Shown here in pieces: positions 8,978 through 38,000 of a stretch of DNA of 64,000 nucleotides. Location of the stretch: sequence record NC_031927.1. One strand, written 5' to 3'. The notes beneath the pieces were generated by a model. That model did not search any database and had not been told where the DNA came from. It saw only the letters and a list, made by a program, of their open reading frames with translations. Both the position numbers and the translations under genes were made by a program. Each line of letters starts with the position of its first letter. The first letter of the stretch is position 1.

Positions 8978-9004
8978 GTTAATATACCCAATCATTTTTT
9001 GATG

Positions 9005-9028
9005 CCCCCTTCGGAAAGGGGTTTTTTT
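9005..9028 (+). terminator. Rho-independent terminator
   Basis: CCCCT-TCGGAA-AGGGG-TTTTTTT. Confidence 0.8.
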
Positions 9029-9059
9029 ATGCTATAATATATAATGTATTATTTGTGTA

Positions 9060-9935
9060 ATGGTAATGTATCATGAACGTATGAAGTTACGAAAAGATGC
9101 TTATTCTAAAAAGTTAGACAATGTAACATCGAGGTGCTATTTTGCAAATGGATTTGCAACTAGGATTAAAAATATTGTAAGTTGCCACAGAATTGCAAAT
9201 AACGTTCAAGTTTATTGGGATGCAAATTGTAAACCATTTTACTATAAAAAATTAAATGAATACTTCCCTGATCTAGTGGAAACCGATGAGTATGTCTCAA
9301 AGACATGGAGACAAGGATGGAGATTAGCCACTTTTCCTGGAGAAATTGGGGAAGGTTTTTCAAATAAAGACGCAATTTTTGAAGAGTTTGATAGTCCAAT
9401 TGTTATCCCATCTCATGGAAAGGGTCGTTGTATTGATTATGAATATCATAGAATTCCCCAACCAATTATCGATGACTATCTTAAAATATTCTCTGAGTTG
9501 AGAATTAAAGATTCTTTTCTTGAGACTGCGGATAAGTTTGCTAAGGAAAATTTTAATTCTGAAACTGTTTCTGTGCATATTAGAAATTGGGTTGACTTTG
9601 CACCTAGAGGAAAAATGCACACCCTATCTCCCTTCATTGACTTGATGGTAGAGCATCCAACATCAAAGTTTTTTGTTTCTACGGATAGTCCCAATAATAT
9701 CAAAATCCTAAAAGAAACGTTTGGTGATGATCGCATTATTAGCTATTGTGGAACAGATCCATCATTTGATGTCTTTATTGATTTACTTCTCTTATCGAAG
9801 AATCGGAATTTGATTGGTTCTGTAATGAGCACTTTTAGTGAAGTTGCTTGGTGGTTAGGTGGAGCTACGGCAAAGGTCAAAATTGCTTATGGTCCCAAGA
9901 CAATGAAGTATATGTACCCAAAACATCACATTTAA
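9060..9935 (+). CDS. O-fucosyltransferase-like (NodZ/GT23-type) glycosyltransferase
   Basis: VSVHIR, FFVSTD and DLLLLSK..LIGSVMSTFSEVAWWLG motifs of GDP-fucose-using GT-B enzymes. Confidence 0.65.
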   Translation: MVMYHERMKLRKDAYSKKLDNVTSRCYFANGFATRIKNIVSCHRIANNVQVYWDANCKPFYYKKLNEYFPDLVETDEYVSKTWRQGWRLATFPGEIGEGFSNKDAIFEEFDSPIVIPSHGKGRCIDYEYHRIPQPIIDDYLKIFSELRIKDSFLETADKFAKENFNSETVSVHIRNWVDFAPRGKMHTLSPFIDLMVEHPTSKFFVSTDSPNNIKILKETFGDDRIISYCGTDPSFDVFIDLLLLSKNRNLIGSVMSTFSEVAWWLGGATAKVKIAYGPKTMKYMYPKHHI

Positions 9936-9975
9936 ACCATTTGTGCTATAATATATTTGTAGCAATCCATTTGTA

Positions 9976-10977
9976 ATGAAAGTAGCACTTATTACTGGGA
10001 TCACAGGGCAAGATGGATCTTACCTAGCTGAACTTCTCCTTCAGAAAGGATATACAGTTCACGGTATTATCCGTCGTGCTTCTATGATTAACACCCACAG
10101 AATTGACCATATCTTTGACCGCATCACTCTCCATTATGGAGACCTTACCGATGCTTTGAGTATCGTATCTATTATTAAAACAGTTCAACCAGATGAAATA
10201 TATAACCTAGGGGCTCAGAGTCACGTTAAGGTTTCATTTGATCAGCCTGAATACACAGCACAGACCGACGCATTGGGCACTCTAAGGGTGCTAGAAGCCG
10301 TCCGTCTTCTTGGTATGGAATCATACGTAAGAATCTACCAAGCGAGCACCAGTGAGCTTTATGGGCTAGTTCAGGAGACACCCCAGAAAGAAACCACTCC
10401 AATGTATCCACGATCCCCTTATGGAGTTGCTAAACTATATGGGTTCTGGATCATCAAAAACTACAGGGAAAGCTATGACATACATGCCTCTAGCGGTATT
10501 CTATTCAATCACGAAAGCTCACGCAGAGGAGAGACGTTCGTCACACGCAAGATCGTCCGAGCCTTGTCCCGAATTAGTGTGGGACTCCAAAGTGATCTAC
10601 AACTTGGAAACCTCAATGCCCGACGTGACTGGGGACACGCCAAAGACTACGTAGAGGCTATGTGGTTGATGCTTCAGCAAGAGAAGCCAGATGATTATGT
10701 GATCGCAACTGGTGAGCAGTATTCTGTAAAGGACTTTGTTAATGCTGCAGCACCATACTTTGGGTTCAATATTGAATGGAGAGGTGAAGGTCTTGATGAG
10801 TTTGGATTCTGTCTCAATACTGGTAGAACAGTTGTAAAAGTCAATCCTAAATATTTCAGACCCGCAGAAGTAGAAACTCTTCTCGGTGATCCCACTAAAG
10901 CAAAGGAAGTTCTTGGATGGACTCCTACTTATACATTTAATGAACTAGTTGAAGAGATGGTACTTAATGGACAATAA
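9976..10977 (+). CDS. gmd: GDP-mannose 4,6-dehydratase
   Basis: [62 protein letters not shown]. Confidence 0.97.
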
Positions 10978-11890
10978 TTCCACAGTTGCAATTTTTGGGT
11001 CTGGTGGTCTAGCTGGAGGAGCAATCACCAGACAGTTTATAAACAAAAGACATAAACTACTCTTACCTCGCAGTAAAGATTTAGATTTACGAGAACAAGC
11101 TGATGTTCGTGCTTGGTTCAAAGCCAATAAAGTTGATTATGTAATCCTAGCTGCTGCCCTAGTCGGCGGCATTATGGCTAACAAGACTCGCAAAGCGGAG
11201 TTCTTACACGACAATCTAATGATGCAGTGTAATGTAATTGACTCTGCTTACTATTCAGGTGTTAAGAAGCTCCTATTCCTAGGAACATCTTGCATCTATC
11301 CTGCTGGACGCCAACACCCACTAAAAGAAAATGAACTCCTTACGGGGGCTCTTGAGCCTACTAACGACGCTTACGCCATCGCAAAGATCGCAGGAATCAA
11401 ACAATGTGACTTCTACAGGGAGCAATATGGATTTGATGCTATCTCTATTATGCCTCCTAATCTATATGGTCCTGGAGACAATTTCCACGAGGGATCAGGT
11501 CACGTCCTCGCATCGTTGATGAACCGCTTCCACAACGCCAAGGTGGCTGGTGAAGCCACTGTAGCTTGCTGGGGTGACGGAACACCTATGAGAGAGTTTC
11601 TCTTCTCTGAAGACCTAGCAGAAGCCTGTGCGTTCTTTATGGATAACTACAGTGACTACGGTCACGTCAATGTTGGAACTGGTGAAGACATCACCATCAA
11701 ACACCTAGCAGAGAGTATTGCAAAGGTTATTGGTTTTGAAGGAGAGATCCTATGGGACACTTCAAAACCAAATGGAAATCCTCGCAAATTACTTGACAGC
11801 ACTGTGGCTAATGAGTTAGGATGGAAGCCCAAGACCAGTTTTGAAGATGGTCTACAGAAAACTTACAACTGGTATTTAAACAATGTATGA
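10967..11890 (+). CDS. fcl: GDP-L-fucose synthase (WcaG/Fcl; ColC-type activity possible)
   Basis: [57 protein letters not shown]. Confidence 0.93.
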
Positions 11891-13034
11891 TTGGAAATTA
11901 ATGGATGATACGGTCACACTTCGTGATCGTATGAAGATGGCTAAGTTTGTTCTAACTACTAGCCGACTAACACAAGGACCACAAGTTCGTAAATTTGAGG
12001 AGCATTGGAGTGACTGGCTTGGAGTTAAACATTCTCTTTTTGTTAGTAGTGGTAGTACTGCCAACAGTCTTTTGGTATCTGCTTGGAAAGATCTAAATGA
12101 TATTCCAGATGGTGCAAAGGTTATTGTTCCTGCCTGCACTTGGGTGACTAACATTGCACCAATCATTCAAAACAATCTAACCCCAGTATTTTGTGATATC
12201 AATCTAAAGGACTTTAGCTTTGATATTAGTTCTCTTCAGACTATTGCATGTGAGCATAAAGATATCCGGGCAATCTTCGTCACACACCTACTAGGTTTCC
12301 CTGCACGGGTAGAGGAGTTTCATAAGATCTTCCCTAACGCAGACATCCTAGAAGACGTTTGTGAGAGCCACGGTGCCGTTATTGAAGGTGGGACTATGGC
12401 TGGTACATATGATGTAGGAGGGACATTCAGCTTCTACTTTGGTCATCATATGACTACTGTTGAGGGTGGTATGGTATCCACTAACAATAGTGATATGTAT
12501 GACTTGATGCGTATGAAGCGCTCTCACGGTTTATCTCGTGAGTCGGTTCATTCTAAAGAGTATGCGAAGATGTATCCCGAGATCAATCCACAGTTCCTCT
12601 TTATGACTGATGGTTATAACTTCCGTAATAATGAGATTGGTGCTGTATTGGGTCAGTCTCAACTAAAGCGTTTGGATAATATGATCGTCAAGCGTAATGA
12701 TAATTATAAGACATACTTCGAGATTGTATCTCTATACTCCCATCTATTCCATGTTCCTGCTTACATTCCAAATCGTATTAGTAGCTTCTGCTTCCCTCTA
12801 ATCTCTAGGGACAAAGCAACTCATCTAAGACTACAGGAGTTGTTGACTGAGTATCGTGTAGAGTATCGCCCAGTTGTAGGTGGAAACTTACTCAAGCAGC
12901 CTTTCTTATCTGCTTATCACGCAGACTGCCCTAACGCAGACATCCTCCACGACCGTGGATTGTATGTTGGAAACAGTCACTTTGTTGGTATAAGCCACTT
13001 ACTAATGCTTGAAGAAATTTTGGAGCAACTTTGA
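11883..13034 (+). CDS. DegT/DnrJ-family PLP enzyme, ColD-type GDP-4-keto-6-deoxymannose 3-dehydratase
   Basis: SSGSTAN, EDVCESHGA and SFYFGHHMTTVEGG (His in place of the Schiff-base Lys); no E1-type Fe-S Cys cluster. Confidence 0.75.
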   Translation: MYDWKLMDDTVTLRDRMKMAKFVLTTSRLTQGPQVRKFEEHWSDWLGVKHSLFVSSGSTANSLLVSAWKDLNDIPDGAKVIVPACTWVTNIAPIIQNNLTPVFCDINLKDFSFDISSLQTIACEHKDIRAIFVTHLLGFPARVEEFHKIFPNADILEDVCESHGAVIEGGTMAGTYDVGGTFSFYFGHHMTTVEGGMVSTNNSDMYDLMRMKRSHGLSRESVHSKEYAKMYPEINPQFLFMTDGYNFRNNEIGAVLGQSQLKRLDNMIVKRNDNYKTYFEIVSLYSHLFHVPAYIPNRISSFCFPLISRDKATHLRLQELLTEYRVEYRPVVGGNLLKQPFLSAYHADCPNADILHDRGLYVGNSHFVGISHLLMLEEILEQL

Positions 13035-13035
13035 T

Positions 13036-13830
13036 ATGACTATTTCTTTTAATTATTTGGGTAACCTGGGACACTTGGGAAACCAAATGTTTCAGTATGC
13101 CGCATTGATGGGTCTTAGCTCCAAGTATAATAGAACCTTTTGTATTCCACATCCCGATACATTTTCAACTGCGAGTTATCAAGAAAATAGAAGCAGTATC
13201 TATAGCGCCTTTGATATCAAACCTCCACATGTTGGGATGAGTAAATTCAACCCAGTTTCAGAGGCACACTTTCATTTTGATAACAACTTATTTGAGAACC
13301 TTCCACCCCAAGATATTGATCTTCGTGGATACTTTCAATGTGAAAAGTGGTTTAAGCATATTGAAGATGATGTGAGAAAGGCATTCACATTCAAGCCCGA
13401 GTATATGGAAGTAGCTCAGTTGATGCGAGATCAGTTAGATGGTGAAGTAATTTCTCTTCATATTAGAAGAACTGATTATATTACCAACCCAAATCATTAT
13501 TGTATGCATATGGGTTACTATTTGAAAGCATTAAAAGTTATGCCTTCTGAGCCAAAGGTAATCATTTTTAGTGATGATACTGAATGGGCAAAGGATCAGA
13601 AAGAGTTTCCTGATGATAGGTTCCTTGTATCCGAGACAAATTGTCCATACACAGATATGGCTCTGATGACTTTATGCGACTACCACATCAATGCAAACAG
13701 CTCCTTCTCCTGGTGGGGCTCTTGGCTATCTAACAGCAAGAAAGTAACAGCTCCAAGTGATTGGTTTTCTGGTCCACTAACTAGTAATAACTTATCTGAT
13801 ATTTATTGTGATGGATGGGAAGTAATCTAA
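13036..13830 (+). CDS. GT11 alpha-1,2-fucosyltransferase-family protein
   Basis: GHLGNQMFQYA, GYFQ, HIRRTDY, FSDD, ANSSFSWWGSWL. Confidence 0.92.
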   Translation: MTISFNYLGNLGHLGNQMFQYAALMGLSSKYNRTFCIPHPDTFSTASYQENRSSIYSAFDIKPPHVGMSKFNPVSEAHFHFDNNLFENLPPQDIDLRGYFQCEKWFKHIEDDVRKAFTFKPEYMEVAQLMRDQLDGEVISLHIRRTDYITNPNHYCMHMGYYLKALKVMPSEPKVIIFSDDTEWAKDQKEFPDDRFLVSETNCPYTDMALMTLCDYHINANSSFSWWGSWLSNSKKVTAPSDWFSGPLTSNNLSDIYCDGWEVI

Positions 13831-14600
13831 TGGGAAAAAATTTAGTATGTCAGATCTTTTTTGATAAAAAATTGATTACTGATTATAAAGTTCATGAAAA
13901 AGACCAGACAAGAGGTGAGGTTGTAACATCTAAGCATTTAGATAATGAGTTGTTCCAACATTCTCAAATACTTGCTAAAAGATACGCAGAGCGTGTAGGT
14001 GCGGATTACATCCTATTTGATAAACCACATATCAATTTTTATAATCCATCTCAAGAAAGATTTAGATTGATGGAAGAAGACCATTGGGCAGAGACATATG
14101 ATAATATATTATATGTTGACTGTGATGCGTTTATCTACAACGAATGCCCCAATATCTTTGAGGAGTATCCACAAGAAAATTTAAGGATTGCTAGGGATAT
14201 GAACCCAGCTATTCCTAATCAGGAGAATGTAATTGTTAGTGAGGTTGGTCTTGATAAAGTGCGCCAATCATATTTCAATGCTGGAATTCTATTGATGCAC
14301 TCATCCACACTTAGGGAATTAAAAAAGGTCATCAAATATAAGGAAAGATTTTCTCTCTTACCTTATGGTGATCAGTCCGAGTTAAATTACTGCACATTGA
14401 AGTATGACATCCCCCATACAGTAATGGACCAAAGATTCAACTCATATGACAGAGATGCATTTATCGGTCATCTATACGGTACGCAAAAGTTTGATGGACT
14501 ATTCCATAGTGCATATCACCTGAAGAAAGCTAAAGAGCAAGCACTAGGTATCAAACCGAAGAAAAAGAAGCTACCATTCACAGTAAAAACTAATTATTAA
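13830..14600 (+). CDS. GT-A glycosyltransferase (GT8-like)
   Basis: ILYVDCD (DxD), YFNAGILL, DQSELN. Confidence 0.75.
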   Translation: MGKNLVCQIFFDKKLITDYKVHEKDQTRGEVVTSKHLDNELFQHSQILAKRYAERVGADYILFDKPHINFYNPSQERFRLMEEDHWAETYDNILYVDCDAFIYNECPNIFEEYPQENLRIARDMNPAIPNQENVIVSEVGLDKVRQSYFNAGILLMHSSTLRELKKVIKYKERFSLLPYGDQSELNYCTLKYDIPHTVMDQRFNSYDRDAFIGHLYGTQKFDGLFHSAYHLKKAKEQALGIKPKKKKLPFTVKTNY

Positions 14601-14604
14601 ACCA

Positions 14605-15174
14605 ATGACTGTTGATGTAAACTATTGGAGTACTTTCTACTCATCAAATCACACTCTAGATTCCTCCAACTTCTGTAGGTTTGTATTAGAGTACTTTAAA
14701 AATCAGTCTTCACTACGCATCCTAGATGCTGGCTGTGGTAATGGTAGAGATAGCTATGCCCTATCCAAATTACACATAGTAACTGGTATAGATACTGCCG
14801 ACTATGTTCCTGAGTCAACAGAGACTTGCTCATTTGAGACTGGAGATTTCTGCACACATGATAAAGATTCTTACGATATTGTGTATTCTAGATTTACTCT
14901 ACACTCAATTACAGATGAGCAACAGGTAGAATTCATCAAGTCTATTGTAAATGCTGGGACTTTCTTATGCATTGAGTGTAGAAGTGATGGAGACATTGAT
15001 ACTGTAAGGGAGCATGGTGATGACCACTATAGAAACTTTGTAAGCTTTGTTCGCCTTCAGAGTATATTGTTGGAGAATGGATTTATAGTGCATGTTGCTG
15101 AAGAAAGTAGGGGATTTGCACCATACAAAGCAGAAGATCCAGTTTGTGTACGATTCATTGCGGAGAAAAATTGA
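14605..15174 (+). CDS. Class I SAM-dependent methyltransferase
   Basis: ILDAGCGNGRDS motif I; YDIVYSRFTLHSI. Confidence 0.9.
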   Translation: MTVDVNYWSTFYSSNHTLDSSNFCRFVLEYFKNQSSLRILDAGCGNGRDSYALSKLHIVTGIDTADYVPESTETCSFETGDFCTHDKDSYDIVYSRFTLHSITDEQQVEFIKSIVNAGTFLCIECRSDGDIDTVREHGDDHYRNFVSFVRLQSILLENGFIVHVAEESRGFAPYKAEDPVCVRFIAEKN

Positions 15175-15704
15175 TGGCAGGTTATCCTGAAAAAGCAGAA
15201 AAGCTAAACACCACACTACTCTGGACTCTCGATCTTCTTGAGACTAGAGGTATTGATAAGTGGTTTGTATCTTATGGTACTTTATTGGGTTTGATTCGTG
15301 ATGGATCATGTATTGATGGTGATGATGATGTAGACATCTGCATTGACAAAGATTGTTGGGATGATGTATATGATCCAATCAAAAAATTGAATAGACTCAA
15401 TGAGCAGTATGTAAAAGAGAACATTATCATCACCAAAAGAACTGCGACATACTCACAAGTAGATTTTTATTGCTGTGATGTAAATGAGCAAGGTGACTTC
15501 AATGATACATGGGAAGATGTTATTTGGAGTAGATGCTATAATGAGTCTGACAAAATTCCAACCATTGAGTTTCAGGGAAGACATTTGAATGTTCCTCATA
15601 ATGCAATTGAAAAACTTTCTAAGCGTTATGGTTCTACTTGGAATCAGAGAATCAAAAGAGGAACTGAAGCCGGAGATGGTTATCGTAAAATAAAAGTATT
15701 ATGA
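15174..15704 (+). CDS. LicD-family nucleotidyltransferase-fold protein
   Basis: WFVSYGTLLGLIRDG...DDDVDI. Confidence 0.85.
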   Translation: MAGYPEKAEKLNTTLLWTLDLLETRGIDKWFVSYGTLLGLIRDGSCIDGDDDVDICIDKDCWDDVYDPIKKLNRLNEQYVKENIIITKRTATYSQVDFYCCDVNEQGDFNDTWEDVIWSRCYNESDKIPTIEFQGRHLNVPHNAIEKLSKRYGSTWNQRIKRGTEAGDGYRKIKVL

Positions 15705-16519
15705 AAAATGAAGTTATGAGACACGACCTAAAAGACACTACATTTATTATACCTCTACGCATTGAGAGTGGAGACAGAATGCGTAATGTAATTACTTCAT
15801 TATGTTATATACTATCAAACTTTGATACTCATATCATTGTAAAGGAGGGTGATACCTCTTCTATATTTCTTGAGGATGTTCTTCCACAAGTAAAAGATTT
15901 CATGGAAGTAGATGAGATTCCTAATCTATTACATGTCTTTGAGGACACGAGTGCTTCTGAGTTCCATAGAACTAGGTATCTTAATGAGATGACTCATATG
16001 GCTACAACAAAGGTTGTGGTTAATTATGATTGTGATATCATCCTTCCCGTGGAGTCCTACATAAAAGCACAGGCAATGATTATTGATGGACCTTCTGATG
16101 TGGTCTATCCATATGGATTCGGTAACTATGCTAAAATGGTAACCGTAGATGATTCAATTGTCTCTGAATTCCTAACTGAAGGATTCAGTATTAATCTCCT
16201 AGAAAAAACTACAAAGCTAAACAATGCTCGTTTTGGTTTCTGTCAGTTCTTTGATAGAGAGGTTTACATCAGTGGTGGCGGGGAAAACGAAAAGTTCATT
16301 GCATATGCTCCTGAAGATGAAGAGAGGGCATTTAGATTTATTACTTTGGGATATAAAGTAGATCGTATTGATCAATTTGTATATCACCTAGAGCATTCAA
16401 GGACACCCAATTCGTGGTATAATAATCCTCATATGCAGAACAATTTTGCCTTATGGGAAGTTTTACAGAAAATGGACAAGCATCAACTAATTGAGCACTA
16501 CAACTTATACAATGGATAA
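15701..16519 (+). CDS. GT-A glycosyltransferase (GT7/GT2 C-terminal-like)
   Basis: YDCD (DxD), GGENEKFIAYAPEDEER, YHLEH. Confidence 0.75.
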   Translation: MKNEVMRHDLKDTTFIIPLRIESGDRMRNVITSLCYILSNFDTHIIVKEGDTSSIFLEDVLPQVKDFMEVDEIPNLLHVFEDTSASEFHRTRYLNEMTHMATTKVVVNYDCDIILPVESYIKAQAMIIDGPSDVVYPYGFGNYAKMVTVDDSIVSEFLTEGFSINLLEKTTKLNNARFGFCQFFDREVYISGGGENEKFIAYAPEDEERAFRFITLGYKVDRIDQFVYHLEHSRTPNSWYNNPHMQNNFALWEVLQKMDKHQLIEHYNLYNG

Positions 16520-17339
16520 AAACAAAGCAATCGGAAAACTACGAGGAATCCCTAGGATCTTCTACATAAATCTGGACGACCATACAGAACGTCGTCAGTA
16601 TATGGAAGACCAGTTTGAATACTGGGGTATTCCTGAGGACAACTATACGAGAGTTCCTGCCCACGATGGTAGGGGTGATAATGATTTGGGTGATGTCCTA
16701 AAAGGTAAGTATCCAGAGCTAATGACTTCCAGTGAAGTTGGATGTACCGTATCACACTTAAAGGCACTTAAGTACTGGGTTGATAACTATCCAGAGGAAG
16801 AGTATCTTGTGGTTATGGAAGATGATTGTGACATTTCAACAGCTGGCTACTGGGGCTTTACATGGAATGATTTTGCGCGTAAAGTACCTTATCACTTTGA
16901 TGTAATTCAACTTGCCGTCATCAATCCCATTGAGATTAATGTTAAGCTTCATCTGAGATTCGTCAATGACTTCTCAACTGCCTGCTATATTATCCGTAAG
17001 CATCACGCAGAGAAGTTAGTCAAACTTCATTGTCGTGGTGATAAGTATAAGCTTGACCAGAACGTTAAGCCTCGTGCTGTTGCTGATGACTTAATCTACA
17101 ACTCTGGTTTATCCTTTGCTATCCCCCTGTTCTTATATAAGATTGCTTTGGGTTCTAGTATCCATGATATTCACGTGAATACATTCCACAAAAGTAGTCA
17201 TGATGGTCTATGGCAGTTCTGGAAAGAACAAGCACCAACCATCCCAGATTGGTCACAGTTCTTTGAGTATGATCCATACTATGGGACACTTCCACCCAGC
17301 CTAGTTGCTAAACAAGCTATCGAAGACCATAATAAATAA
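16512..17339 (+). CDS. GT25-family glycosyltransferase
   Basis: FYINLDDHTERR, SEVGCTVSHL, VMEDD, STACYII. Confidence 0.85.
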   Translation: MDKNKAIGKLRGIPRIFYINLDDHTERRQYMEDQFEYWGIPEDNYTRVPAHDGRGDNDLGDVLKGKYPELMTSSEVGCTVSHLKALKYWVDNYPEEEYLVVMEDDCDISTAGYWGFTWNDFARKVPYHFDVIQLAVINPIEINVKLHLRFVNDFSTACYIIRKHHAEKLVKLHCRGDKYKLDQNVKPRAVADDLIYNSGLSFAIPLFLYKIALGSSIHDIHVNTFHKSSHDGLWQFWKEQAPTIPDWSQFFEYDPYYGTLPPSLVAKQAIEDHNK

Positions 17340-17377
17340 GGTAGCAGGAACTAAAAAAATACACTCTTCTTTATATT

Positions 17378-21505
<4,128 letters not shown>

Positions 21506-21539
21506 ATAAGATATATCAAAGTACTGATACCATTACATC

Positions 21540-23723
21540 ATGGCAGCCTTTAATTTTCCAGCAAACCCAAGTGTAGGGGACCAAGTAACCAATGGAGGAG
21601 TTACTTATACTTGGGATGGTTACAAATGGAACACCACAACCGCACCATTTAGTGTAGGTGCTACTGGTGCTACGGGTCCATTGGGGTTTGGTATCTATGC
21701 CTTTTGTAGGACTACATCTACTGGTGTCTTACTTCCAAATTATGGTAGTGGTATTTTAGGTGTAAACAGAGTATCAACGGGTGTTTATAGATATACACTT
21801 TCTCAACCATATAATAGCGCGGATTATATGGCTCAGGTTTCATTAGTATCCTCGGGTAATATTAATCCATCCGATTGGAATGTTATTGTTGAAAATATTA
21901 CACCAACAACATTTGATGTATTCACATATAGAGCAAACAATACTCCAATCAACCTAGAACACGCCGTTACTGTATATGGTGTAGATGGTCCTACAGGTAC
22001 TGGTAGTGCCTATCAGTCTTGGTTGGAAGTTGGTAACTTTGGAACAGAACAGGATTTCATCAATTCACTACAAGGTCCTACAGGAGGATCTGGTGGGCAA
22101 GGCAGCACTGGTGCTACTGGTCCCATTGGTCCCAATGGAGCCACTGGTCCCCAAGGTTTGGATGGAACATCCGTTGCTCTAAAAGGTACGGTTGATGATG
22201 CTAGTGACCTACCATCAATCCCAGGTACTGTTGAGGGTGATTTGTATGTTGTTCTTAATACTGGTGGTGGTTTTAATGCTGGTGATGGTGCTGTAAAAAA
22301 TGACCTAACCACAGGCACTCTGGCTGATTGGAGTAATGTAGGTCCTCTACAAGGTCCTCAAGGAAATATCGGTCCAATAGGCGCAACTGGTCCCATAGGT
22401 TCTACTGGTCCCCAAGGTATTCCTTCTACTGATGGTGGCTTCTTTGTTCTTTCAGGTGAGAGAAGCGGACCTCCCGCTCTTAATCAATTCTTTGCGTGGG
22501 GTAATGGAGACAGTGCTGATAATGGAGTTCAAATCCAGGAAGGATGTTTCCTTGATTATGTTTCTATAACAGTAGAAAGACCATTTGGAACTATTCCAGT
22601 TGAAGTTACTGCTTATGTAAATGGCTCTGCTACTATACTTAAAGCTATTGGTACCACTGGATCAAAAACATCAACATCATCTGGTAGCCCTGTTGAGATT
22701 TTCCCAGGAGATTATGTAAATATTAGATGTTCTCAAACTGGTAACAACTCAACTGCTGGCGGAACTGTTGGTGGTTGTGTGGGTTCACTACTATTCTCTA
22801 CCGCAGGTGCGCGTGGTGCTACTGGCGAAACAGGTCCTCCTGGTCCCCCTGATGGCGCTACTGGTGATACTGGTCCTGTAGGTCCTCTTGGTCCTGTTGG
22901 TCCTACTGGTCCTCTTGGTGCTACTGGTCCCGTTGGTCCTACTGGTATTGGTGCTCCTGGTCCTGATGGTCCCACTGGAGCTACTGGTCCTAATGGTCCT
23001 GCTGGTCCCGTTGGTACTGTTGTGTTGGGTACTGTTGCTGATATTGCTAGCCTGCCCCCATCTGCTAATGTTGGTGAAGGTTTTGTAGTAACTGCCGAAG
23101 CTAATGATGTATATGTTTGGAATGGTTCTTCCTGGAATAGTATTGGACCAGTTCAAGGTCCTATAGGTCCCGTTGGTCCTGCTGGTCCTCAAGGTGCTAC
23201 TGGTATTAAAGAGCAGTCTTATATCAAGTCAACATTCCTAACCGAGTCAACTGTAAACTCATCAACAACATTCCAGTCATTTAACATACTCAATGATTCT
23301 GCTATCCTTGAATCGGGTGGATATAGATATGCCGCAGAGATACCTGGAAGACAAGGTATTGGTGCTGGTGGTATTATTGTCCCAGAAACTGGGATCTATA
23401 TGATTACTGCCTCACTATACTTCACAACACCTAGTGTGCAGAGAGCTAGTATTGGATTGAGATTTGCTATCGCAGAACTAGCAGATCCAGAAAATACAAA
23501 TGCCGAGGGAGTTGCTTTACCAGAAACAGGAGCTATGGGATACATTAGATCTGGTTCAGGTCATAATGAAGCATCAGTCACCCTTACAACTATCGCTAGC
23601 TTGGAAGTAATTCCTGGTGTTAGGGAAGATCAGGTTCAAATACAGTTGGCTAGATTGGCTTCGAGTGGTACTGTTAGTGTAGAAGCTAATCGTAGTATTA
23701 TTACCATTACAAAAATTGCCTAA
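21540..23723 (+). CDS. Collagen-like fibre protein, paralogous modules to 17378-21505
   Basis: FPANPSVGD...YTWDG.KW N-terminus; GPT/GAT repeats; shared GGFF...ER.G...FA.GNG and GYIR...HNE.S modules; CTAAATA upstream. Confidence 0.85.
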
Positions 23724-23749
23724 ATATTTTATGAAGAATAAAGTATGAT

Positions 23750-24340
23750 ATGGCTATACAAATACACCGAGGGATATTGGGGTCACATTCTCCTTTGATT
23801 TTATTCACGGGAAGAGCATCAGATGGAACCACTTCCGCTAATGGGGCAAATAGAATAAATGGGATAAGCGTACAGTATAATACTGATGATGCAGACTATG
23901 TTGATGTTATTGATGATAGTTTGACCACTTCAAACAACCATACAACATTTGATGTATATAAAGTTCATTATAGTGAATGGTTGGATGTTGATGGTAATTC
24001 TTTTGGCTCTGCCGAGAATGTTGTTCAGTATATTGAGCAACAAATAACAGCATCCCAGGATCGGATTGCGTTTACTCAAGCAACAGCACACACACTTACT
24101 GGTATTCCAGAGACCGTCAGTGCTTCTGTTGGTGTTGCATTCACATATAATGCAAACTACTACAATGGCGTTTCATACTTCTGGGATGAGGCATCTTTCC
24201 CATCTGGTGTGGAAGTTTCTCGTTATGATCGGAGGAGGATTAGTGGTATCGTCACACAGACTGGTTCATATACAATCAACTTCCAAGTAGCAAATCACAA
24301 TGGGACTGTCCCAACTAGCGTGATTGTTGATGTAACCTAA
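23750..24340 (+). CDS. Hypothetical virion protein with C-terminal Ig-like (He_PIG-like) segment
   Basis: SFPSGVEV...ISGIVTQTGSYTINFQVAN pattern; CTAAATA upstream. Confidence 0.6.
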   Translation: MAIQIHRGILGSHSPLILFTGRASDGTTSANGANRINGISVQYNTDDADYVDVIDDSLTTSNNHTTFDVYKVHYSEWLDVDGNSFGSAENVVQYIEQQITASQDRIAFTQATAHTLTGIPETVSASVGVAFTYNANYYNGVSYFWDEASFPSGVEVSRYDRRRISGIVTQTGSYTINFQVANHNGTVPTSVIVDVT

Positions 24341-24383
24341 AAGATATGCTATAATATCCAGGTACTTAACAAAAGATCATATT

Positions 24384-24500
24384 ATGTTCGGTTTTACTCC
24401 TGAAGCAGAAATCCTTAATGCTCGTCTAGCAATGCTAGGTTTCGTCATCGCAGTCGGAACCTACGCAACTACTGGTCAAATTATCCCCGGCGTATTCTAG
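24384..24500 (+). CDS. hli: High-light inducible protein (38 aa, AMG)
   Basis: MFGFTPEAEILNARLAMLGFVIAVGTYATTGQIIPGVF, carrying the AExxNxRxAMxG and TGQIIPG motifs; absent from the ORF track. Confidence 0.95.
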   Translation: MFGFTPEAEILNARLAMLGFVIAVGTYATTGQIIPGVF

Positions 24501-24533
24501 GATACAGTCTAAAAAAAACTAAATAGATATAAT

Positions 24534-24559
24534 AAGAGGGATGTATACCCTCTTTTTTT
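24534..24559 (+). terminator. Terminator after hli
   Basis: AAGAGGG-N7-CCCTCTT plus T-tract. Confidence 0.75.
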
Positions 24560-24873: not shown

Positions 24874-24909
24874 ATATAAATATCTCTGAAGAGAAGATTA
24901 TATCTTACA

Positions 24910-26463
24910 ATGTCTCAAATTATATTCCCGAGTAACCCATCAGTTGGTGAATTTTATAATGTGGGTGATGTTACATATAAGTGGGATGGATCTAAATGGA
25001 TCTCTACCAGCGTAGCCCCAGTAAATATTGGAGCAACTGGACCATCTGGTCCTGCTGGACCTACTGGAGCTACAGGATCAACTGTTGTTGATGGTAGTGA
25101 TATCTCTGCTGGTGTAGTGACCGCAACAGAATTTGACGGTAATCTCAGTGGAAATGTCGCTGGCGATACTACTGGTATCCATAATGGGGATGTATATGCT
25201 AGAGATGGATCTAAAATTATATTAGAAACTGCTATTAATAATGGTGATACAGCACACTATACAGGCACAGTAACTGGCGACGTAACTGGAGATACAACAG
25301 GAACACATTACGGAACCAATACCGGTCAGCAGCACGGAGATGTGTACACCAATGACGGTGGTCAGCAAGTCATAGATACTGCTGCTATTCCATCTCCCCT
25401 ATTCAAAGGTGATGCGGAAGGTTTAGATGGTGACCCAAATATACAAGTAACTAACCTAACAGTAGTTGGCTTAACTAATGTTGGCGTTGTAACTGCTGCC
25501 GAAATAACTACAGATGATCTTAATGCTGATAGTGTAATTGCTGGGTTTGTTACATCAGTAAACTCATATACTAGTGGAATCGCTACTGCTGGAAAGTTTT
25601 ATGGTGATGGTTCAAACCTAACTGGAATAGCAACACAGTCTGGTGCTACTGGAGCCACTGGTCCCCAAGGTTCTCAAGGTGCTACTGGTATTCCTGGTCC
25701 TTTTGGTCCATATGGAATCACAGGAGCTACTGGTGCAACTGGTGTTGATGGTCCTGTTGGTTCTACTGGAGCCACAGGTGATCCTGGTTTAGCTGCTATG
25801 TGCTTCACATATAGGTATGATAGTGATACTGATACTAACGATGAGCCATTGAGTGGTCGCATCAGCTTCAACAATTCAAACCCAGAAAATGCAACTGTTA
25901 TTGCGATCAATGATACTAATGGAGATGCTGTTGATATCTCAAACTTCTTTGGTCTATTTGGTGCTGGATCTAAAGTTTATATTCAAGAGGAGAGAGATGC
26001 TAGTAGCTTTATTCTTCTCACACTAAACGCAGGAGCTTCTGATCAAGGTGGTTGGTATAAGTTCACCAACTTTACAGTCAACATATCTGGTAATGTTACC
26101 TTTACTAACCTCAATAAGTTGATGGTTTGTGTTCAGCCACAAGGTCCAGCTGGTCCAACGGGCGCAACGGGTCTTACTGGAGCTGGAACTTCGGCAACAT
26201 CATTCCAGTGGAACGATCATATCATCCCAGATTCAACGGAGTCTTATGATATAGGTTCAGCAGAATATAAAGTTCGCCACCTATTTTTAAGTGATAACTC
26301 TGTTTATACTGATAGTGGGGAGGTTAGAGTTGGCTTCTCAACCCAAGTTGGAACATCAACCAAGATGCTAAAAGGAACAAAACTACAAGAGATTGTGGCT
26401 AATTCTGTTGACTTCGCAGACTTTAAAGTTAAGATGGCTTCGGAGGATTTTGGTTCCTTATGA
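24910..26463 (+). CDS. Fibre protein with short collagen segments
   Basis: [16 protein letters not shown]-terminus, GAT repeats, WNDHIIPD...YDIGSAE; TATAAATA at 24875. Confidence 0.85.
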
Positions 26464-26507: not shown

Positions 26508-29500
26508 ATGGCTTACAAGATTAATGGCGTCATTCGCTTAGCAGATAACGGAGACGCAAATTTAGGTTTAGTAACCGCAACCAATATTAACTCCACTGGT
26601 GTAGCCACGGCTACGGAGTTTGATGGTAAGGTATCAAAGAAGGCTATAACCGAGCAGACCGAAGGTGATGATTCTAATGTTACTGGTGCCGATGAACTTC
26701 TAATTTATGATCAACAGACCGATTCCCTATTAAGAGTGTCTGTTGATGATTTTATTAGTGCGTCTGGTATTGGTACTTTAGTTAATGATTTTAATCATAT
26801 TGATAGTGACTCACTAGTCGTAACTGGACTATCAACTATTGGTGGAGTTGAGATTGGTGCTGGTATTATTACAGCATCTGCAGGGGTTGGAGTTGTAACA
26901 TTCTATGGTGATGGTAGTAATTTAGAAGGAGTTATTACTACACCTTCCATTGTTTCTACCACAGAGCCAACCACTAGACCCAATGGTGATGACCTAGAAC
27001 AGGGTGACCTATGGTTCTCTAGTGCTGCTGGCGAAGGGCAATTAAGACAATATACTTATTATAATGGTGCTTGGATTGATTCCAACCCAATGAATGGTGG
27101 TACTTCTGTATATGCTGCAGTAGCTGGTGTATCTACTAATGTAAATGGAACTGGAATTGTAACTGCTAGCCAAGGTAATTTTAGTGGTATTGTAACTGCA
27201 GGTTCTTTTATTGGCGATGGGTCAGGTCTAACTGGTTTAGGTGATTTGACTGGAGCCACTGGTGCAACTGGTGCAGATTCAATTGTTCCAGGTCCCCAAG
27301 GTTCTACTGGTGCTACTGGTCCTAAAGGTGATCAAGGTGATGCAGTAATTGGAGCCACTGGATCCACTGGTCCCCAAGGAGATATTGGTGCTTCTGGTGC
27401 TACTGGTCCTAAAGGTGACCAAGGTGATGCCGTAATTGGTGCTACTGGTCCTCAAGGAGATATTGGTGCCTCTGGTGCTACTGGTCCTAAAGGAGACCAA
27501 GGTGATGCAATTATTGGTGCTACAGGCGCTACTGGTGACCAAGGTGATGAGGGTCCTGTAGGAGCCTCTGGTGCTACTGGTCCTAAAGGAGACCAAGGTG
27601 ATGCAATTATTGGTGCTACAGGCGCTACTGGTGACCAAGGTGATGAGGGTCCTGTAGGAGCCTCTGGTGCTACTGGTCCCAAAGGTGACCAAGGTGATGC
27701 AGTAATCGGTGCTACCGGTCCTCAAGGTGATATTGGTGCCTCTGGTGCAACTGGTCCTCAAGGTGATATTGGTGCCTCTGGTGCTACTGGTCCTAAAGGA
27801 GACCCAGGTTCTGCTGGGGTTTCTGCTACATTAACAGCAGGTACATATCTATCCGGCGATTCATATAACGGCAGCACTAGTAGAACTTGGACAGTAGATG
27901 CTACTTCAGCAAATACTGCGTCTAAAGTTGTTGCTAGAGATGCTAGTGGTAATTCTAGTTTTAAGAAAATAACAGTAGATACTGATTCCGATACTGATGG
28001 ACAGGTAGCTGCACATTTCTATGGTGCGAATGGGTCTACGAATCGCGGTCTTGAAGTACGCCTTTCTTCGGCGGGTTCTATAGATAATGCTAAGGTTATT
28101 TTAGATGCCAAACAAGCTGCAGATGGTGAACTTTGGATTGCTACTAGGGGTGTAGAAAGAGCTGCATTTGATAGTGGATCTTTTAAAATGGGTGCGAATG
28201 TTGGCACTTCGCCAGAAGTTCTGATTAATAGCTCTGGTGATGCCACCTTCGCTGGCGATATCACCGCAGCTAGTTTTAGTGGTGATGGTTCTGGTCTAAC
28301 CAACCTACCTGGTGGTGGTAGTCCCGGAGATCCTTCTGCTGCTTCTGCTGATAAACTAACAACATCTAGAACCTTATGGGGTCAAAGCTTTGATGGTACT
28401 GCTAATGTATCAGGTAATCTTACTGGTGTGACCAATATTACCTTATCAGGTACTGTTGATGGTCGTAATGTATTGGATGATGGTCAAGCTGGTGATAACC
28501 TAATAACATTAAGTGGTGTTGCTCGCGATGCTACTAATCTAGGAACCTTCACAGGCGCTACTATTTCTGATAATGACACCATTAAAGGAGCTTTACAAGA
28601 CCTAGAGACCGCATTGGAATCAACTCCAGGCTCTCCCAGCGGTCCTACTGGTGGTGAGGCAGATAGTCTATTGCTAGCAGCACGTAATAGTACCAATGCA
28701 ACTCACTATCTAACATTCGCAACCGCACGGACTGGACAGCAGTCTCAATATACTGATACTGGATTAACATATAACCCAAGCACAAATACTCTTAGTGCAA
28801 CATTTAGTGGTAATGGTTCTAGTCTAACTTCACTCAATGCATCTAATCTTGGTTCTGGAACCATTCCCAACGATAGATTCCCTGCTGTATTACCAACAGT
28901 TAGTGGAGAAAATCTAACTAACTTACCTGGTAGTGGATCCCCAGGCGCTCCTGGTGCCGCTACGATTGCAGTAACTGACGAATCATCTGACACAGAAAAC
29001 TTCCTAGTATTCACTAATGATGCTGTAGGTAATGAGCTTCCAAAGACTGGAAGTAATTTAACATTTAATGCATCTACAGGACGGCTAACAGCCACTAGCT
29101 TTAGTGGTAATGGTTCTAGTCTAACTTCACTCAATGCATCTAATCTTAGTTCTGGAACCATTCCCAACGATAGATTCCCTGCTATATTACCAGTAGCTGA
29201 TGGTTCTAACTTAACTAACATTAGTCGTTCTGACGTATCAACTAGTGTACAAGTAATTACAAATAATACTGCTAACGAAACTGTATTTATTACCTTTTCT
29301 GACGGTCAATCAGGAACCCAAAGAATAGAAACTGATGTCGATCTTACTTACAATCCTTCGACAAATACTCTCAGTGCAACATTCTCTGGTAATGGTTCTA
29401 ATCTAACTAACCTAACTTCAGGTAACCTAGTGGGTGCTTTGCCTGCTATTGATGGTTCTTCTCTTACTGGAATTAATGCAGCAAAGGATGGTATATTCTA

Positions 29501-29633
29501 CGAAAACGGCACAAATGTTACGCAGAATTATACAATCACTTCAGGCAAAAATGCTATGAGTGCTGGTCCAATCACTATTAATACCGGAGTAACCGTAACA
29601 GTTCCTACTGGATCTGAGTGGACAGTTGTGTAA
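26508..29633 (+). CDS. Tail/virion fibre protein with collagen and repeated LTYNPST modules
   Basis: GPKGDQG/GAT repeats, F.G.GS.LT.L repeats, C-terminal [27 protein letters not shown]; TATAAATA at 26470. Confidence 0.88.
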
Positions 29634-35005: not shown

Positions 35006-38000
35006 ATGATTTCATCAGAAACCAAGATTTTACTTAAGCGTTCTGGCGTTCCAGGACGTATTCCATCCTTAGCGGACCTAAAACTAGGCGAGTTGGGTAT
35101 CAACTATTATGACGGTAAGGTATACCTCCGTCAAGAAAATGATGTAGTTGGTTCCCGTATCATCGAGCCTGGTCAGGGTGACGATATTGGTAGGACTATT
35201 TTCGTAACCGTAAATGGTAACGACAACAACTCCGGTCTTAACGAGAGAGACTCCGTAAGAACCATCAAAAAAGCCGCTGAGTTAGCTCAGTTTGGCGATG
35301 GTATCAAGGTGTATCCTGGTCAGTATATCGAAGACAACCCCATTACATTCCGCGATTTGGTTGCGGTTGAGGGTATGGATCTTCGTAACGTCCTAGTTAC
35401 TCCTGCTAATCCAGAGAAAGATTTATATTTAGTTGGTGACGGTTTCCACGCAACTAACCATTCATTCGTATCAAACCAAGATTCTCGCGATGCTGCCGCG
35501 ATCATCTCATTCCGCCCTCTAGAAGGAACCGCATCTGATCGCTACTTTGATGCTGCCCGTCTAATCAGGGACAACCTAAACTTCATTTCAGGCGAAGCTG
35601 TAGGTTTCTTGACTAGTGGCTATTCAGGCTTTGCTGCTGGTCAAAGATCTCAAGATGCTGCTCGTGCTATTGAACTCAACACAAACTTTATTAGTGAAGA
35701 GTCCTTCCAGTATATCAACAGCCCAGATTATAGGGGTCCAGCATACACTAATCCAGATATCAACCAGTGTCGTAGTGACCTAAAGGATATTCTAGCTGGA
35801 TGGAGATATGACTTAATCTCTGATGGTAACTCCGAGTCAACTGGTGTAGGTCTAACCTACTACGCACCAGTCAAGTTCACCAAGACTACAAATATTACTG
35901 ACCTAGTTTATGATAACACAACTGGTTTGTTGGTTATTGAGACTGAACTAAGTACTCAATCACTACCTGGTGATGAGATTAAGCTAAGAGATATTCAACT
36001 AGATTGCCCTCCTTATGGTAATTCATTCCTAATTGCTGGATTTGATTATGATAATGTAAGTGGTGTTGGTACAGTAACTCTACCTTTCATCCACGATATT
36101 CAAGCTGGTGATACAATCAAGCTAGATGATCTCAAGTTTGACTGCCCTCCATATGGCGCTCAAGCATATTCAGTATCTGACTTTGTTTATGATGAGACTA
36201 CTGGCGGAAGCACAGTAACTCTATCAAGTAACCATAACCTTAAAGTTGGTGATGCAATTGAACTCCGCGATATGCAGTTTGATTGCCCAGCTTATGGTGG
36301 TACTTTCTCCAACGTTGTAAACATTGAGTATAACAATGTAAGTGGAGAAGCAATCCTAACTTATGCGGATGCTGCTGACCTAGACGCTGGTGATGTTGTT
36401 CTTCTATATGATATCAAGCTATCCTGCCCAGCATACGGCAATGCTATTTCAATCACTGGCTTCGATTACGACAACTTTACTGGTATAACACAAGCTTCTT
36501 TCGCATCACCTCACGGTCTACGGGTTGGTGATCTTGTTAAGTTTGAGAACCTTAAGTTTAGCTGTGAGAGCTACTTGAGCGACACTTATAATATCGTTGG
36601 ATTTGAGTACAACAATCTAACTGGTGAAGCTCTAGCATCATTCTCTTCTGATCACAACCTAGCTGGTGGAAGTAATGTTGTACTAGACAATCTAACCTTT
36701 GCTTGTAATAGCTACTTCCCAGAAGGAATCAATGTTACTGGATTTAACTACACCAATACAACTGGCGTAAGTACAATCAGCCTAGATCACGCACATAACT
36801 TACAGATTGGTGATCGTTTCCAACTAGAAGACCTAGTATTTGCTTGTAACAGCTACTCATTCACTGATATTGATGTTACCGCAGCAACTTACGATAACGT
36901 TACTGGCTTTGTAAACATCACTCTAGCTGCTCCTCACGGCAGTTCTGTTGGTGAGTTCGTCAAGCTAGACGGTATTGAGTACTCTTGCCCTGGTGGTTCT
37001 GGTATCACAACTACAATCTTCCCTGATGGAACGATTGGTGATCAGTTTGAGATCCTTTCAGTACCTTCACCTAGTGCTTTGATTGTAAATGTAGGTCCTT
37101 CTGCAATCCCACACAGCTATGTTGGTGGAGGAACTGCTACGGTTGGTATTACTACAACAGTATTCCCTGATGGAACTCAAGGTAATGAGTTTGTTGTAAC
37201 CGACCTAGTTGACTCCCTAACATTGGTAACAAACGTTGGTGTATCTACTATCGCTCACACATATGCTGGTAGTGGTAAGATCTTTGTTGGCTTCACAACA
37301 ACAGTATTCCCCGATGGAACACAAGGTAATGTATTCCCAGTTCTAGGAGTACCTGCTGCTAATCAAATAGCACTAAATGTTGGTACTAGCACCATCGAAC
37401 ATACTTATGTTGGTGGTGGTACAGCTTCTAATGAAGACACATTCCTAAATGTATCTGGCTTCACCTATAACGATGCCGATGGAACTGGATTAGTAACATT
37501 GGGTTCCAACCACAACCTAGTTGTTGGTGATAGTTTCATCCTAGAAGACCTCAAGTTTACTTGTGATAGTTACAGAAATACCGCAAGCACATTTGATATC
37601 AGTGACTTCCAGTATGATAATGTAACTGGTCTATCCACCGTTGTTATCACATCATCTCACGATCTACGGGTCAATGATACGATTGCTCTTTATGATATTG
37701 AGTTCTCTTGCCCCAATGGTTCTGGTATCACAACTACAATCTTCCCCGATGGAAGCGTAGATAACTTCTATGATGTTGTTGCGGTTATTGACCCCAACAC
37801 AATCATCACAAGAATTGGTACCTCCACAATCCCACACTCATATGTTCAGGGTGGTTTGCTTCAGGTTGGTATCACTACTAACATCTTCCCAGATGGAACA
37901 CGTCCAAGTGATAACTTCTTTGATGTTGTTTCAGTTCCAGCACCTAATCAGATCCTAACTAACGTTGGTTTGAGTTCTATTGCTCACACCTATGCTTCTG

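Follow-up and report, generated by a model that had tools for sequence, protein, structure and literature searches.

Clusters of sugar genes have been known in T4-like cyanophages since 2005, when Sullivan et al. described "LPS gene clusters" (for lipopolysaccharide) in P-SSM2 and proposed that they alter the host's surface during pseudolysogeny (PMC1079782). Sullivan et al. (2010) reported such clusters near hli03 in P-SSM2, S-SSM7, and S-SM2, with GT11 and GT25 glycosyltransferases in common, and asked if they might be "stuffer DNA" (PMC3037559). Later papers repeated the ideas of host-surface alteration or DNA modification without tests (PMC7029224, PMC12801897). Here we analyze a ten-gene cluster from Synechococcus phage S-CAM7, at positions 9,060 to 17,339 of a 64,000-nucleotide stretch of sequence record NC_031927.1 (the window). 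Like the "LPS gene clusters," it lies in a hyperplastic region of a T4-like cyanophage, combines nucleotide-sugar enzymes with glycosyltransferases, includes homologs of the shared GT11 (T4-GC 260) and GT25 (T4-GC 266), and has GT25 last. It differs in having a ColD-type branch (shared only with phage ACG-2014f) and an extra GT23-like fucosyltransferase, and in that its GT25 gene abuts genes for Gly-X-Thr collagen fibres instead of hli or photosynthesis genes. The kind of cluster is not new, but these three features are. We tentatively propose that the cluster glycosylates S-CAM7's own virion fibres. We rank this first, followed by remodelling of host LPS or lipooligosaccharide (LOS), glycosylation of other virion proteins, no function or another product, and DNA modification.

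Bases 9000–24000 of the window match S-CAM7 isolate 0910CC49 (KU686212.1 / NC_031927.1) at 100% identity. S-CAM7 is a 216-kb T4-like cyanomyovirus (Kyanoviridae, Mazuvirus), and the window is the final 64 kb of its record; the region was already deposited and annotated in part. Ten successive open reading frames (ORFs) fill 9060–17339 on the + strand:

9060..9935, +, gene 1: fucosyltransferase-superfamily protein, GT23-like (NodZ/FUT8 fold), from an AlphaFold2 model and Foldseek
9976..10977, +, gene 2: GDP-mannose 4,6-dehydratase (Gmd); TIGR01472 at 540 bits (passes the cut-off of 415), PF16363 with E = 9e-148
10949..11890, +, gene 3: GDP-L-fucose synthase-type epimerase/reductase (Fcl); NF047922 at 422 bits (misses the cut-off of 500), E. 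coli Fcl (1bsv) at 311 bits
11883..13034, +, gene 4: ColD-type GDP-4-keto-6-deoxymannose 3-dehydratase, dependent on pyridoxamine 5'-phosphate; its top PDB matches are E. coli ColD (2gms, 3gr9, 3b8x, 2r0t; E about 1e-49)
13009..13830, +, gene 5: GT11 (alpha-1,2-fucosyltransferase family); PF01531 at 88 bits
13815..14600, +, gene 6: GT8-like glycosyltransferase, a weak call; PF01501 at 21.5 bits, under the cut-off of 24.3
14605..15174, +, gene 7: S-adenosylmethionine (SAM)-dependent methyltransferase; PF13649, PF13489, PF13847, PF08241
15144..15704, +, gene 8: LicD-family-like phosphotransferase, a partial match; PF04991 at 28 bits, NF045866 at 48 bits
15701..16519, +, gene 9: putative glycosyltransferase, at most GT7-like; phrog_1721 "galactosyl transferase" with E = 4e-6, Glyco_transf_7C with E = 0.023 (below cut-off)
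16491..17339, +, gene 10: GT25 glycosyltransferase, conserved as the 3'-terminal gene of all cyanomyovirus sugar clusters; PF01755 at 46 bits

A preliminary description of this DNA had claimed ten consecutive, mostly coupled sugar genes directly before the fibres, and all ten ORFs are present, overlapping or nearly touching from gene 2 onwards. With the longest ORFs, genes 2–10 are spaced by -31 to +4 nt, and genes 1 and 2 are the only separated pair (40 nt apart). With the GenBank starts, the spacing of genes 2–10 is -11 to +10 nt, except for an 82-nt gap before gene 10. With the GenBank start of GT25 (window position 16602), the protein would lose about 37 residues from its N-terminus, some of them at positions invariant in nine cyanophage lineages (invariant from residue 11), so the true start is probably near 16491–16520.

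The fibre genes follow at once:

17378..21505, +, fibre A, 1375 amino acids: N-terminal coiled region, 165 Gly-X-Y triplets, and a predicted C-terminal jelly roll similar to tumor necrosis factor (TNF) or C1q
21540..23723, +, fibre B, 727 amino acids, collagen-like; its C-terminus is a 42%-identical paralog of fibre A's
23750..24340, +, 196-amino-acid protein with a weak PKD-like match, which accompanies fibre B in relatives
24910..26463, +, fibre D, 517 amino acids, collagen-like; promoter-like motif TATAAATA at 24875
26508..29633, +, fibre E, 1041 amino acids, collagen-like; TATAAATA at 26470

The junction between GT25 and the fibres is conserved across the S-CAM7 clade. A large protein collection contains 2788 relatives of GT25, of which we sampled eight, all on long contigs. 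Seven of these metagenomic contigs have GT25 at 71–86% identity, and all seven also carry ColD (75–84%). In those seven, a fibre gene of the fibre-A, fibre-B, or collagen type follows GT25 after 32–43 nt (or after 190 nt in L143, with a 53-amino-acid ORF between), and Gly-X-Thr collagen fibres lie within 4 kb (7/7). The eighth contig (L146; 63% identity) has a terminator after GT25, then ferredoxin and psbA, without a fibre. Two loci from IMG/VR (L004 and L006) tell a similar story: gmd, fcl, colD, gene 9, and GT25 are 79–94% identical to those of S-CAM7, the interior has been replaced, and GT25 abuts a homolog of fibre A. A late-type promoter-like motif is present at the junction in 8 of 8 loci from the S-CAM7 clade. 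Synteny is kept beyond the fibre block as well: in S-CAM7, a DUF6433 protein (58120–58743) is encoded upstream of thyX, and the same pair lies downstream of the fibres in L145.

Between its conserved ends, the cluster varies. Gmd, Fcl, ColD, and GT25 are 72–93% identical and in the same order in diverged relatives, but the interiors of the seven contigs differ, with GT6, GT92, GT32-type glycosyltransferases, sulfotransferases, FkbM-type methyltransferases, an extra dehydrogenase, or a duplicated GT11 or gene 9. (Sulfotransferase, FkbM-type methyltransferase, GT6, GT92, and GT32-type genes are found in the variable middles of L140, L143, L144, and L145.) With its conserved flanks and variable center, the cluster of the S-CAM7 clade resembles O-antigen loci, and its gene content suggests that sister phages make sulfated or otherwise different glycans.

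A second collagen module lies outside the window. In the baseplate module of S-CAM7 (12914–20410 of the record, or L138 4078–11574), two Gly-X-Thr collagens are followed by a GT1 glycosyltransferase, a weakly GT1-like protein, and a 2-oxoglutarate (2OG)-Fe(II) oxygenase. These collagens have 201 and 46 triplets, with threonine leading at the third (Yaa) position and proline there in 22 triplets of the larger one. The baseplate module of ACG-2014f (L137 13505–18981) similarly contains, in this order, a Gly-X-Thr collagen (131 triplets, with threonine in 65), a GT1-family glycosyltransferase, a 2OG-Fe(II) oxygenase, and a tail fibre. The only PDB sequence matches of the S-CAM7 oxygenase are prolyl 4-hydroxylases (E = 2e-5 to 2e-3). 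Outside S-CAM7 and ACG-2014f, the only copy of the GT1 enzyme, a possible priming transferase, is a distant one in S-CBWM1, which adjoins a tail fibre. In the collection, no cyanophage groups other than S-CAM7 and ACG-2014f have comparable Gly-X-Thr collagens or the pair of GT1 and 2OG oxygenase beside a collagen, and ColD-type genes above 60% identity are likewise confined to these two. Because collagens sit beside GT1 and an oxygenase similar to prolyl 4-hydroxylases, S-CAM7's collagens are likely to be post-translationally modified.

Some viruses glycosylate their own virions. For virion glycans, chloroviruses and mimiviruses rely on pathways of the Gmd/Fcl type and on transferases that they encode themselves, and the validated multi-enzyme glycosylation sets of these lytic large viruses, as well as of mycobacteriophages, serve the virion. 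Virion proteins in the cytoplasm are fully accessible to cytoplasmic enzymes. Like the systems of chlorovirus PBCV-1 (capsid glycans), mimivirus (fibrils), and mycobacteriophages (capsid and tail tube), S-CAM7 combines a virus-encoded Gmd/Fcl-type pathway with soluble transferases and a methyltransferase, near structural genes in the S-CAM7 clade; it differs in that its host is a cyanobacterium, that collagen-like tail fibres are proposed as acceptors, and that the glycan is deduced from genes. In the searchable literature, we came across no paper that proposes glycosylated virions for cyanophages.

As homology shows, Gmd converts GDP-mannose to GDP-4-keto-6-deoxymannose, which an Fcl-type enzyme can reduce to GDP-L-fucose and which a ColD-type 3-dehydratase diverts to a 3,6-dideoxyhexose of the colitose type. 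Two enzymes of the fucosyltransferase type (GT23-like and GT11), three or four other transferases (GT8-like, GT7-like, GT25, and LicD-like), and the methyltransferase could then build a short capped oligosaccharide, possibly methylated or phospho-substituted. In the weakest step of our proposal, the acceptors would be the threonine-rich collagen-like fibres while they fold in the cytoplasm. The GT1 glycosyltransferase and the prolyl-4-hydroxylase-like oxygenase beside the other S-CAM7 collagens may prime these acceptors. Fibre glycans would then differ among related phages according to the cluster's variable middle. A bolder version strikes us as unlikely: that phage enzymes alone put a fucose/colitose-type O-glycan on proline-hydroxylated, threonine-rich collagen fibres; that the cassette recombines between its flanks (gmd-fcl-colD on one side, GT25 and a fibre gene on the other); and that the resulting fibre "serotype" affects host recognition or the stability of the particle.

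Of the enzyme assignments, Gmd, Fcl-type, ColD-type, GT11, methyltransferase, and GT25 are well supported by profile or PDB matches, in agreement with the preliminary description. The cluster has only one Fcl-type gene, which is below the Fcl equivalog cut-off (422 versus 500 bits) and could also act as a ColC-type colitose synthase. In gene 4, the single aligned position that differs between the ColD variant 3b8x and wild-type 2gms has the wild-type histidine, which in ColD stands in place of the lysine of sugar aminotransferases. Because it keeps this histidine, gene 4 is predicted to be a 3-dehydratase rather than an aminotransferase. S-CAM7 resembles the GDP-L-colitose pathway of the E. 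coli O55 type (ColB/Gmd, ColD, ColC) in having Gmd, ColD with its histidine, and an adjoining Fcl/ColC-type enzyme. Unlike that pathway, the cluster lacks ManB/ManC and O-antigen processing genes, and it is carried by a lytic phage.

Gene 1 had no match in Pfam or in a PDB sequence search, and its distant homologs bear PF05830 (NodZ) or PF01531 (GT11). Its AlphaFold2 model (pLDDT, the predicted local distance difference test, of 86; pTM, the predicted template modelling score, of 0.88) matched NodZ first (3six, E = 1.4e-9) and FUT8 (both GT23), followed by plant FUT1, POFUT2, and POFUT1. The previous description of gene 1 as GT23-like is therefore right at the level of fold (NodZ/FUT8 matches with E about 1e-9). 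The genes previously described as GT8-like, GT7-like, and LicD are present as well, but their family matches are weak or partial. For instance, the PF04991 match of gene 8 is above the cut-off but spans only 31 N-terminal residues (40–70), and a PDB sequence search with gene 9 found nothing useful. Gene 6 is kept in the relatives L004, L006, and L143, and gene 9 is kept beside GT25 in L004, L006, L143, and L144. GT25 itself has only a distant match in the PDB (E = 0.05). (Gene 7 is named adenylylsulfate kinase in GenBank; Pfam and NCBIfam yield only SAM-methyltransferase families.)

All ten enzymes look soluble: their highest 19-residue Kyte-Doolittle hydropathy is at most 1.47, and none has a transmembrane-like segment. 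Nor did Pfam or NCBIfam identify a flippase, polymerase, ligase, or initiating transferase (of the Wzx, Wzy, or WaaL type) among the ten genes. We considered that the cluster might be an O-antigen conversion module of the kind found in temperate phages (gtrABC, oac, or wzy type), but a gtr- or wzy-type module is ruled out by the soluble enzymes and the lack of matches to these proteins or to acetyltransferases. (Among those of the window's proteins that were scanned, we noticed no integrase.) The same argument does not apply to LOS-type core extension, which requires no flippase or polymerase of its own. The soluble transferases might instead extend nascent host LPS or LOS at the cytoplasmic face, with fucose or colitose caps masking an LPS-related receptor. 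The purpose could be superinfection exclusion, or keeping progeny off cell debris. We consider this alternative possible, if somewhat unlikely. GT25, GT8, GT11, LicD, and ColD are LPS/LOS enzyme families, and there is precedent in outer-core enzymes of the Lic2A, LgtC, and LicD types. The outer-core LOS enzymes of Haemophilus and Neisseria (Lic2A/LpsA of GT25, LgtC of GT8, and LicD) are a similar combination and are also soluble or peripheral, although the similarity to S-CAM7 is distant and at the level of family, and no cellular members of the phage GT25 clade were found. Alteration of the host's surface is also the standing hypothesis for such clusters (PMC1079782, PMC3037559, PMC7029224, PMC12801897). 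Moreover, LPS matters for S-CAM7's adsorption, because host galE mutations confer resistance to S-CAM7 (preprint 10.64898/2026.10.08.757702).

On the other side, the original authors needed pseudolysogeny to make host-surface alteration work (PMC1079782). The LPS alternative also leaves unexplained both the conserved GT25–fibre junction of the S-CAM7 clade and the limitation of the ColD module to lineages that have collagens. And cytoplasmic transferases can modify newly made LPS only, which limits how far the surface would change in a slow-growing host that is being lysed.

Furthermore, the GT25 clade seems to reside in phages. Homologs of S-CAM7's GT25 are found in 98 phage records, all of them cyanophages or marine single-cell viruses, and its counterparts in S-T4, P-SSM2, S-SSM7, S-SM2, P-TIM68, and S-CAM9 are 46–69% identical to it. 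Across nine lineages, 60 positions are invariant. No match came from 185,579 species genomes scanned with the single sequence, and an alignment-based scan of cellular genomes gave only three contigs from metagenome-assembled genomes. (These contigs, L134, L135, and L136, are assigned by GTDB to Verrucomicrobiales, Methanobacteriota, and Ignavibacteriaceae; they are probably mis-binned phage DNA, with several genes that are 57–75% identical to, and syntenic with, cyanophage sugar clusters.) A pattern-based scan found no member of the clade in cyanobacterial genomes, so these enzymes do not appear to be recent copies of host LPS genes.

Several observations weigh against fibre glycosylation. First, in nine lineages (ACG-2014f, RN05-S, S-T4, P-SSM2, S-SSM7, P-TIM68, S-SM2, S-CAM9, and S-PRM1), the variable sugar cluster always ends in GT25, but what follows is small DUF680-type genes and then hli, ferredoxin, plastocyanin, or psbA, not fibres. 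In these lineages, there is no collagen within 14–20 kb of the GT25-terminated cluster. We searched for collagens with tblastn, using an S-CAM7 collagen protein as the query, and among cyanophages the matches were essentially only in S-CAM7 and ACG-2014f; by this search, none of the nine cluster-bearing phages except ACG-2014f has a matching collagen. (The same search matched collagen segments in fibres of mycobacteriophages, coliphages, and Vibrio and Bacillus phages.) Placement amid hli and photosynthesis genes, without adjoining collagen fibres, speaks for host LPS remodelling.

Second, collagens occur without the enzymes. A DNA pattern for four Gly-Ala-Thr triplets matched over 120 viral contigs, including giant-virus bins. 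Among 120 of these loci that we retrieved, 112 have a collagen ORF, but none has relatives of the ten enzymes nearby, and just 6 have a relative of any of 134 ORFs from cyanophage sugar clusters. (Gly-Ala-Thr collagens in giant-virus bins, from GVMAG contigs, are for instance among L007, L015, L016, L070, and L085. The median share of threonine at Yaa across the 120 loci is 0.62, for loci that were chosen for Gly-Ala-Thr runs.) Because these collagens lack the enzymes and the clusters of the nine lineages lack collagens nearby, there appears to be no general link: threonine-rich viral collagens and such clusters each generally occur without the other. Among the observations that would speak against it, the preliminary description had named a cluster that is independent of Gly-X-Thr collagens and alters host LPS instead, and the nine other lineages come close to this; the co-occurrence of cluster and collagens holds throughout the sampled S-CAM7 clade.

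Third, the junction itself could be merely inherited. In S-CAM7, hli is 7 kb downstream of GT25, just past fibre B, with fibre A, fibre B, and the 196-amino-acid gene in between. All of the contigs with the junction are from one lineage, so the adjacency could go back to a single event in which an ancestor gained fibre genes between GT25 and hli. Fourth, the closest structural relatives of gene 1 fucosylate glycans rather than proteins, and colitose is mainly known from O-antigens. Finally, we found no published glycoproteomics of S-CAM7 virions in the literature, and no glycan has been observed on S-CAM7 proteins.

Clusters in phages that lack collagens could also be explained if all of the cyanomyoviruses that carry a cluster glycosylate capsid, tail, or fibre proteins of the virion that are not collagens, with the adjacency in S-CAM7 being incidental. 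Apparently soluble enzymes and a phage-resident GT25 clade would fit this idea too, and mycobacteriophages set a precedent, with phage enzymes that glycosylate the capsid and tail tube (Freeman 2023, as cited in PMC12619734). But nothing points to a particular acceptor, and the junction in the S-CAM7 clade would be left unexplained, so we view this as decidedly unlikely.

The proposed acceptors are rich in threonine. In fibre A, threonine is at Yaa in 93 of the 165 triplets, with 45 GAT, 25 GST, and 5 GPT triplets. Fibres B, D, and E have Pfam Collagen matches, and again threonine is the commonest residue at Yaa. The preliminary description had GAT, GST, and GPT dominating the triplets: threonine at Yaa, GAT, and GST are borne out, but GPT is not (5/165 in fibre A). 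It also had the fibres ending in C1q/BclA-C-like domains, but neither Pfam nor a PDB sequence search identified a C1q or BclA domain in the fibres. Instead, a model of fibre A's C-terminus, built on eight sequences (with a domain pLDDT of 60–80), matched TNF ligands, C1q-like domains, and the Bacillus exosporium proteins ExsFA and BxpB by fold (E = 7e-6 to 2e-4). We have moderate confidence that fibre A, and by paralogy fibre B, end in a TNF/C1q-type head; what remains of the previous claim is thus a similarity of fold, without a sequence match.

BclA-type exosporium glycoproteins of Bacillus likewise have Gly-X-Thr repeats and neighboring sugar-pathway genes, and they end in a TNF/C1q-type jelly roll like the one predicted for fibre A. 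In contrast to BclA, S-CAM7's repeats are dominated by GAT and GST rather than GPT, there is no sequence homology, the proteins are phage tail fibres rather than spore filaments, and the S-CAM7 system is known from genes alone. We also considered whether threonine at Yaa by itself implies glycosylation, and we rejected this, as Gly-Ala-Thr collagens are frequent in viral contigs and in the fibres of coliphages, mycobacteriophages, and Vibrio phages without such genes nearby.

Another system to compare is the animal one (prolyl 4-hydroxylase and the GT25 enzyme COLGALT), along with mimivirus L230. As in these systems, S-CAM7's GT25 adjoins collagens, and a prolyl-4-hydroxylase-like oxygenase and a glycosyltransferase lie beside others. 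Animal GT25 enzymes glycosylate lysine at Yaa after its hydroxylation to hydroxylysine, whereas lysine is rare at Yaa in S-CAM7 (6 GPK triplets in fibre E, which are the only ones among these fibres). We identified no lysyl hydroxylase. Because lysine at Yaa is rare and the oxygenase resembles prolyl rather than lysyl hydroxylases, we rejected the animal-type route (galactose on hydroxylysine) as the main route.

Farther downstream, a 4168-amino-acid ORF (35006–47512) is followed by three fibre-like proteins (47897–53941, 54025–56094, and 56300–57436), each of which ends in a Peptidase_S74 (endosialidase chaperone) domain. None of the four has collagen repeats, and TATAAATA precedes most of them.

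The signals for transcription around the cluster and the first fibres are:

9006..9028, +, intrinsic-terminator-like hairpin and T-run, which closes the upstream transcription unit
9030..9038, +, extended -10 promoter-like motif TGCTATAAT, about 22 nt before gene 1
9944..9952, +, second TGCTATAAT, before gmd; kept in 6 of 7 relatives
17332..17339, +, late-type promoter-like motif NTAAATA in the gap between GT25 and the fibre, 46 nt ahead of fibre A's start codon
24384..24500, +, hli (high-light-inducible protein) gene, with its own TGCTATAAT at 24347
24534..24554, no strand assigned, bidirectional terminator-like hairpin behind hli; no other strong terminator lies between 9028 and this one

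The search pattern for late-type motifs was the 8-base consensus of T4 late promoters (a 7-base form appears in PMC3037559), and the sigma-70-type pattern was generalized from a motif that we read in the window. There are 10 copies of TGCTATAAT in the window, versus 0.8 expected by chance. (They are at 828, 8031, 9030, 9944, 15534, 24347, 59235, 59825, and 61906 on the + strand and at 57444 on the - strand.) Most of the copies precede non-structural genes at a short distance: nrdB, gene 1, gmd, hli, and a nuclease gene each have one about 20–30 nt ahead of them, and thyX has one farther ahead. TGCTATAAT probably serves the phage as a sigma-70-type promoter element for early or middle genes. 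Late-type motifs (TATAAATA or NTAAATA) are 30–46 nt upstream of every fibre gene and also precede other structural genes.

The cluster and the fibres therefore have different classes of promoter motif: a sigma-70-type extended -10 for the cluster, as for nrdB, hli, and thyX, and late-type for the fibres. This is another point against fibre glycosylation, and sigma-70-type motifs like those of metabolic genes speak for LPS remodelling. But it counts only mildly, because enzymes that are made early can act on proteins that are made late. On this basis, we would place the cluster among the early or middle metabolic genes and the fibres among the late genes, and read-through is possible. Strong hairpins bracket 9028–24534, and no terminator separates GT25 from fibre A, in contrast to L146, where one stands after GT25 and no fibre comes next; this difference favors a link with the fibres. 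We did not find the timing of expression of any cyanophage sugar cluster in the literature, where the papers on P-HM2 and P-SSM2 cover marker genes only.

Two other explanations do not involve a surface or virion glycan. The cluster might be cargo with no current function in infection ("stuffer DNA," as raised by Sullivan et al. 2010, PMC3037559), or it might make another soluble or exported host glycoconjugate. We consider this quite improbable, given that the ten ORFs are intact and tightly packed, that Gmd, Fcl, ColD, and GT25 have kept their order and 72–93% identity, and that GT25 has 60 invariant positions over nine lineages. Or the cluster might hypermodify phage DNA with glycans, as protection against host restriction. 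This was raised for cyanophage glycosyltransferases (PMC12801897), and glycan hypermodification of DNA by viral transferases has been documented (Pyle 2024, as cited in PMC12619734). However, a GDP-fucose/colitose pathway with a LicD-like protein and six transferases is atypical of DNA-modifying sets. And although the window encodes ThyX, we noticed no gene in the window for making hydroxymethyl-pyrimidines (the rest of the genome was not screened). This explanation seems to us highly improbable.

Overall, the preliminary description's central idea, that the cluster glycosylates the virion's fibres, is supported in part: it gains from the conserved junction, the soluble enzymes, and the second collagen module, and loses from clusters without collagens, collagens without enzymes, and the split in promoter classes. 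Cyanomyoviruses are among the ocean's most abundant viruses, and their "LPS gene clusters" have been without a tested function since 2005 (PMC1079782, PMC3037559). The S-CAM7 clade, with its conserved junction, cassette-like interior, and second collagen module, offers a concrete alternative to host-surface remodelling, and because S-CAM7 is cultured on Synechococcus WH7803, the chemistry of its virions and that of LPS can be set directly side by side. Should the target be host LPS, a lytic phage would be converting the surface of its host, which is rare. Should it be the fibres, marine T4-like phages would join giant viruses and mycobacteriophages in making virion glycans of their own, and host range would gain a glycan layer among its determinants. 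And if the phage makes a fibre O-glycan of its own, the purpose of the cyanophage "LPS clusters" would be settled.

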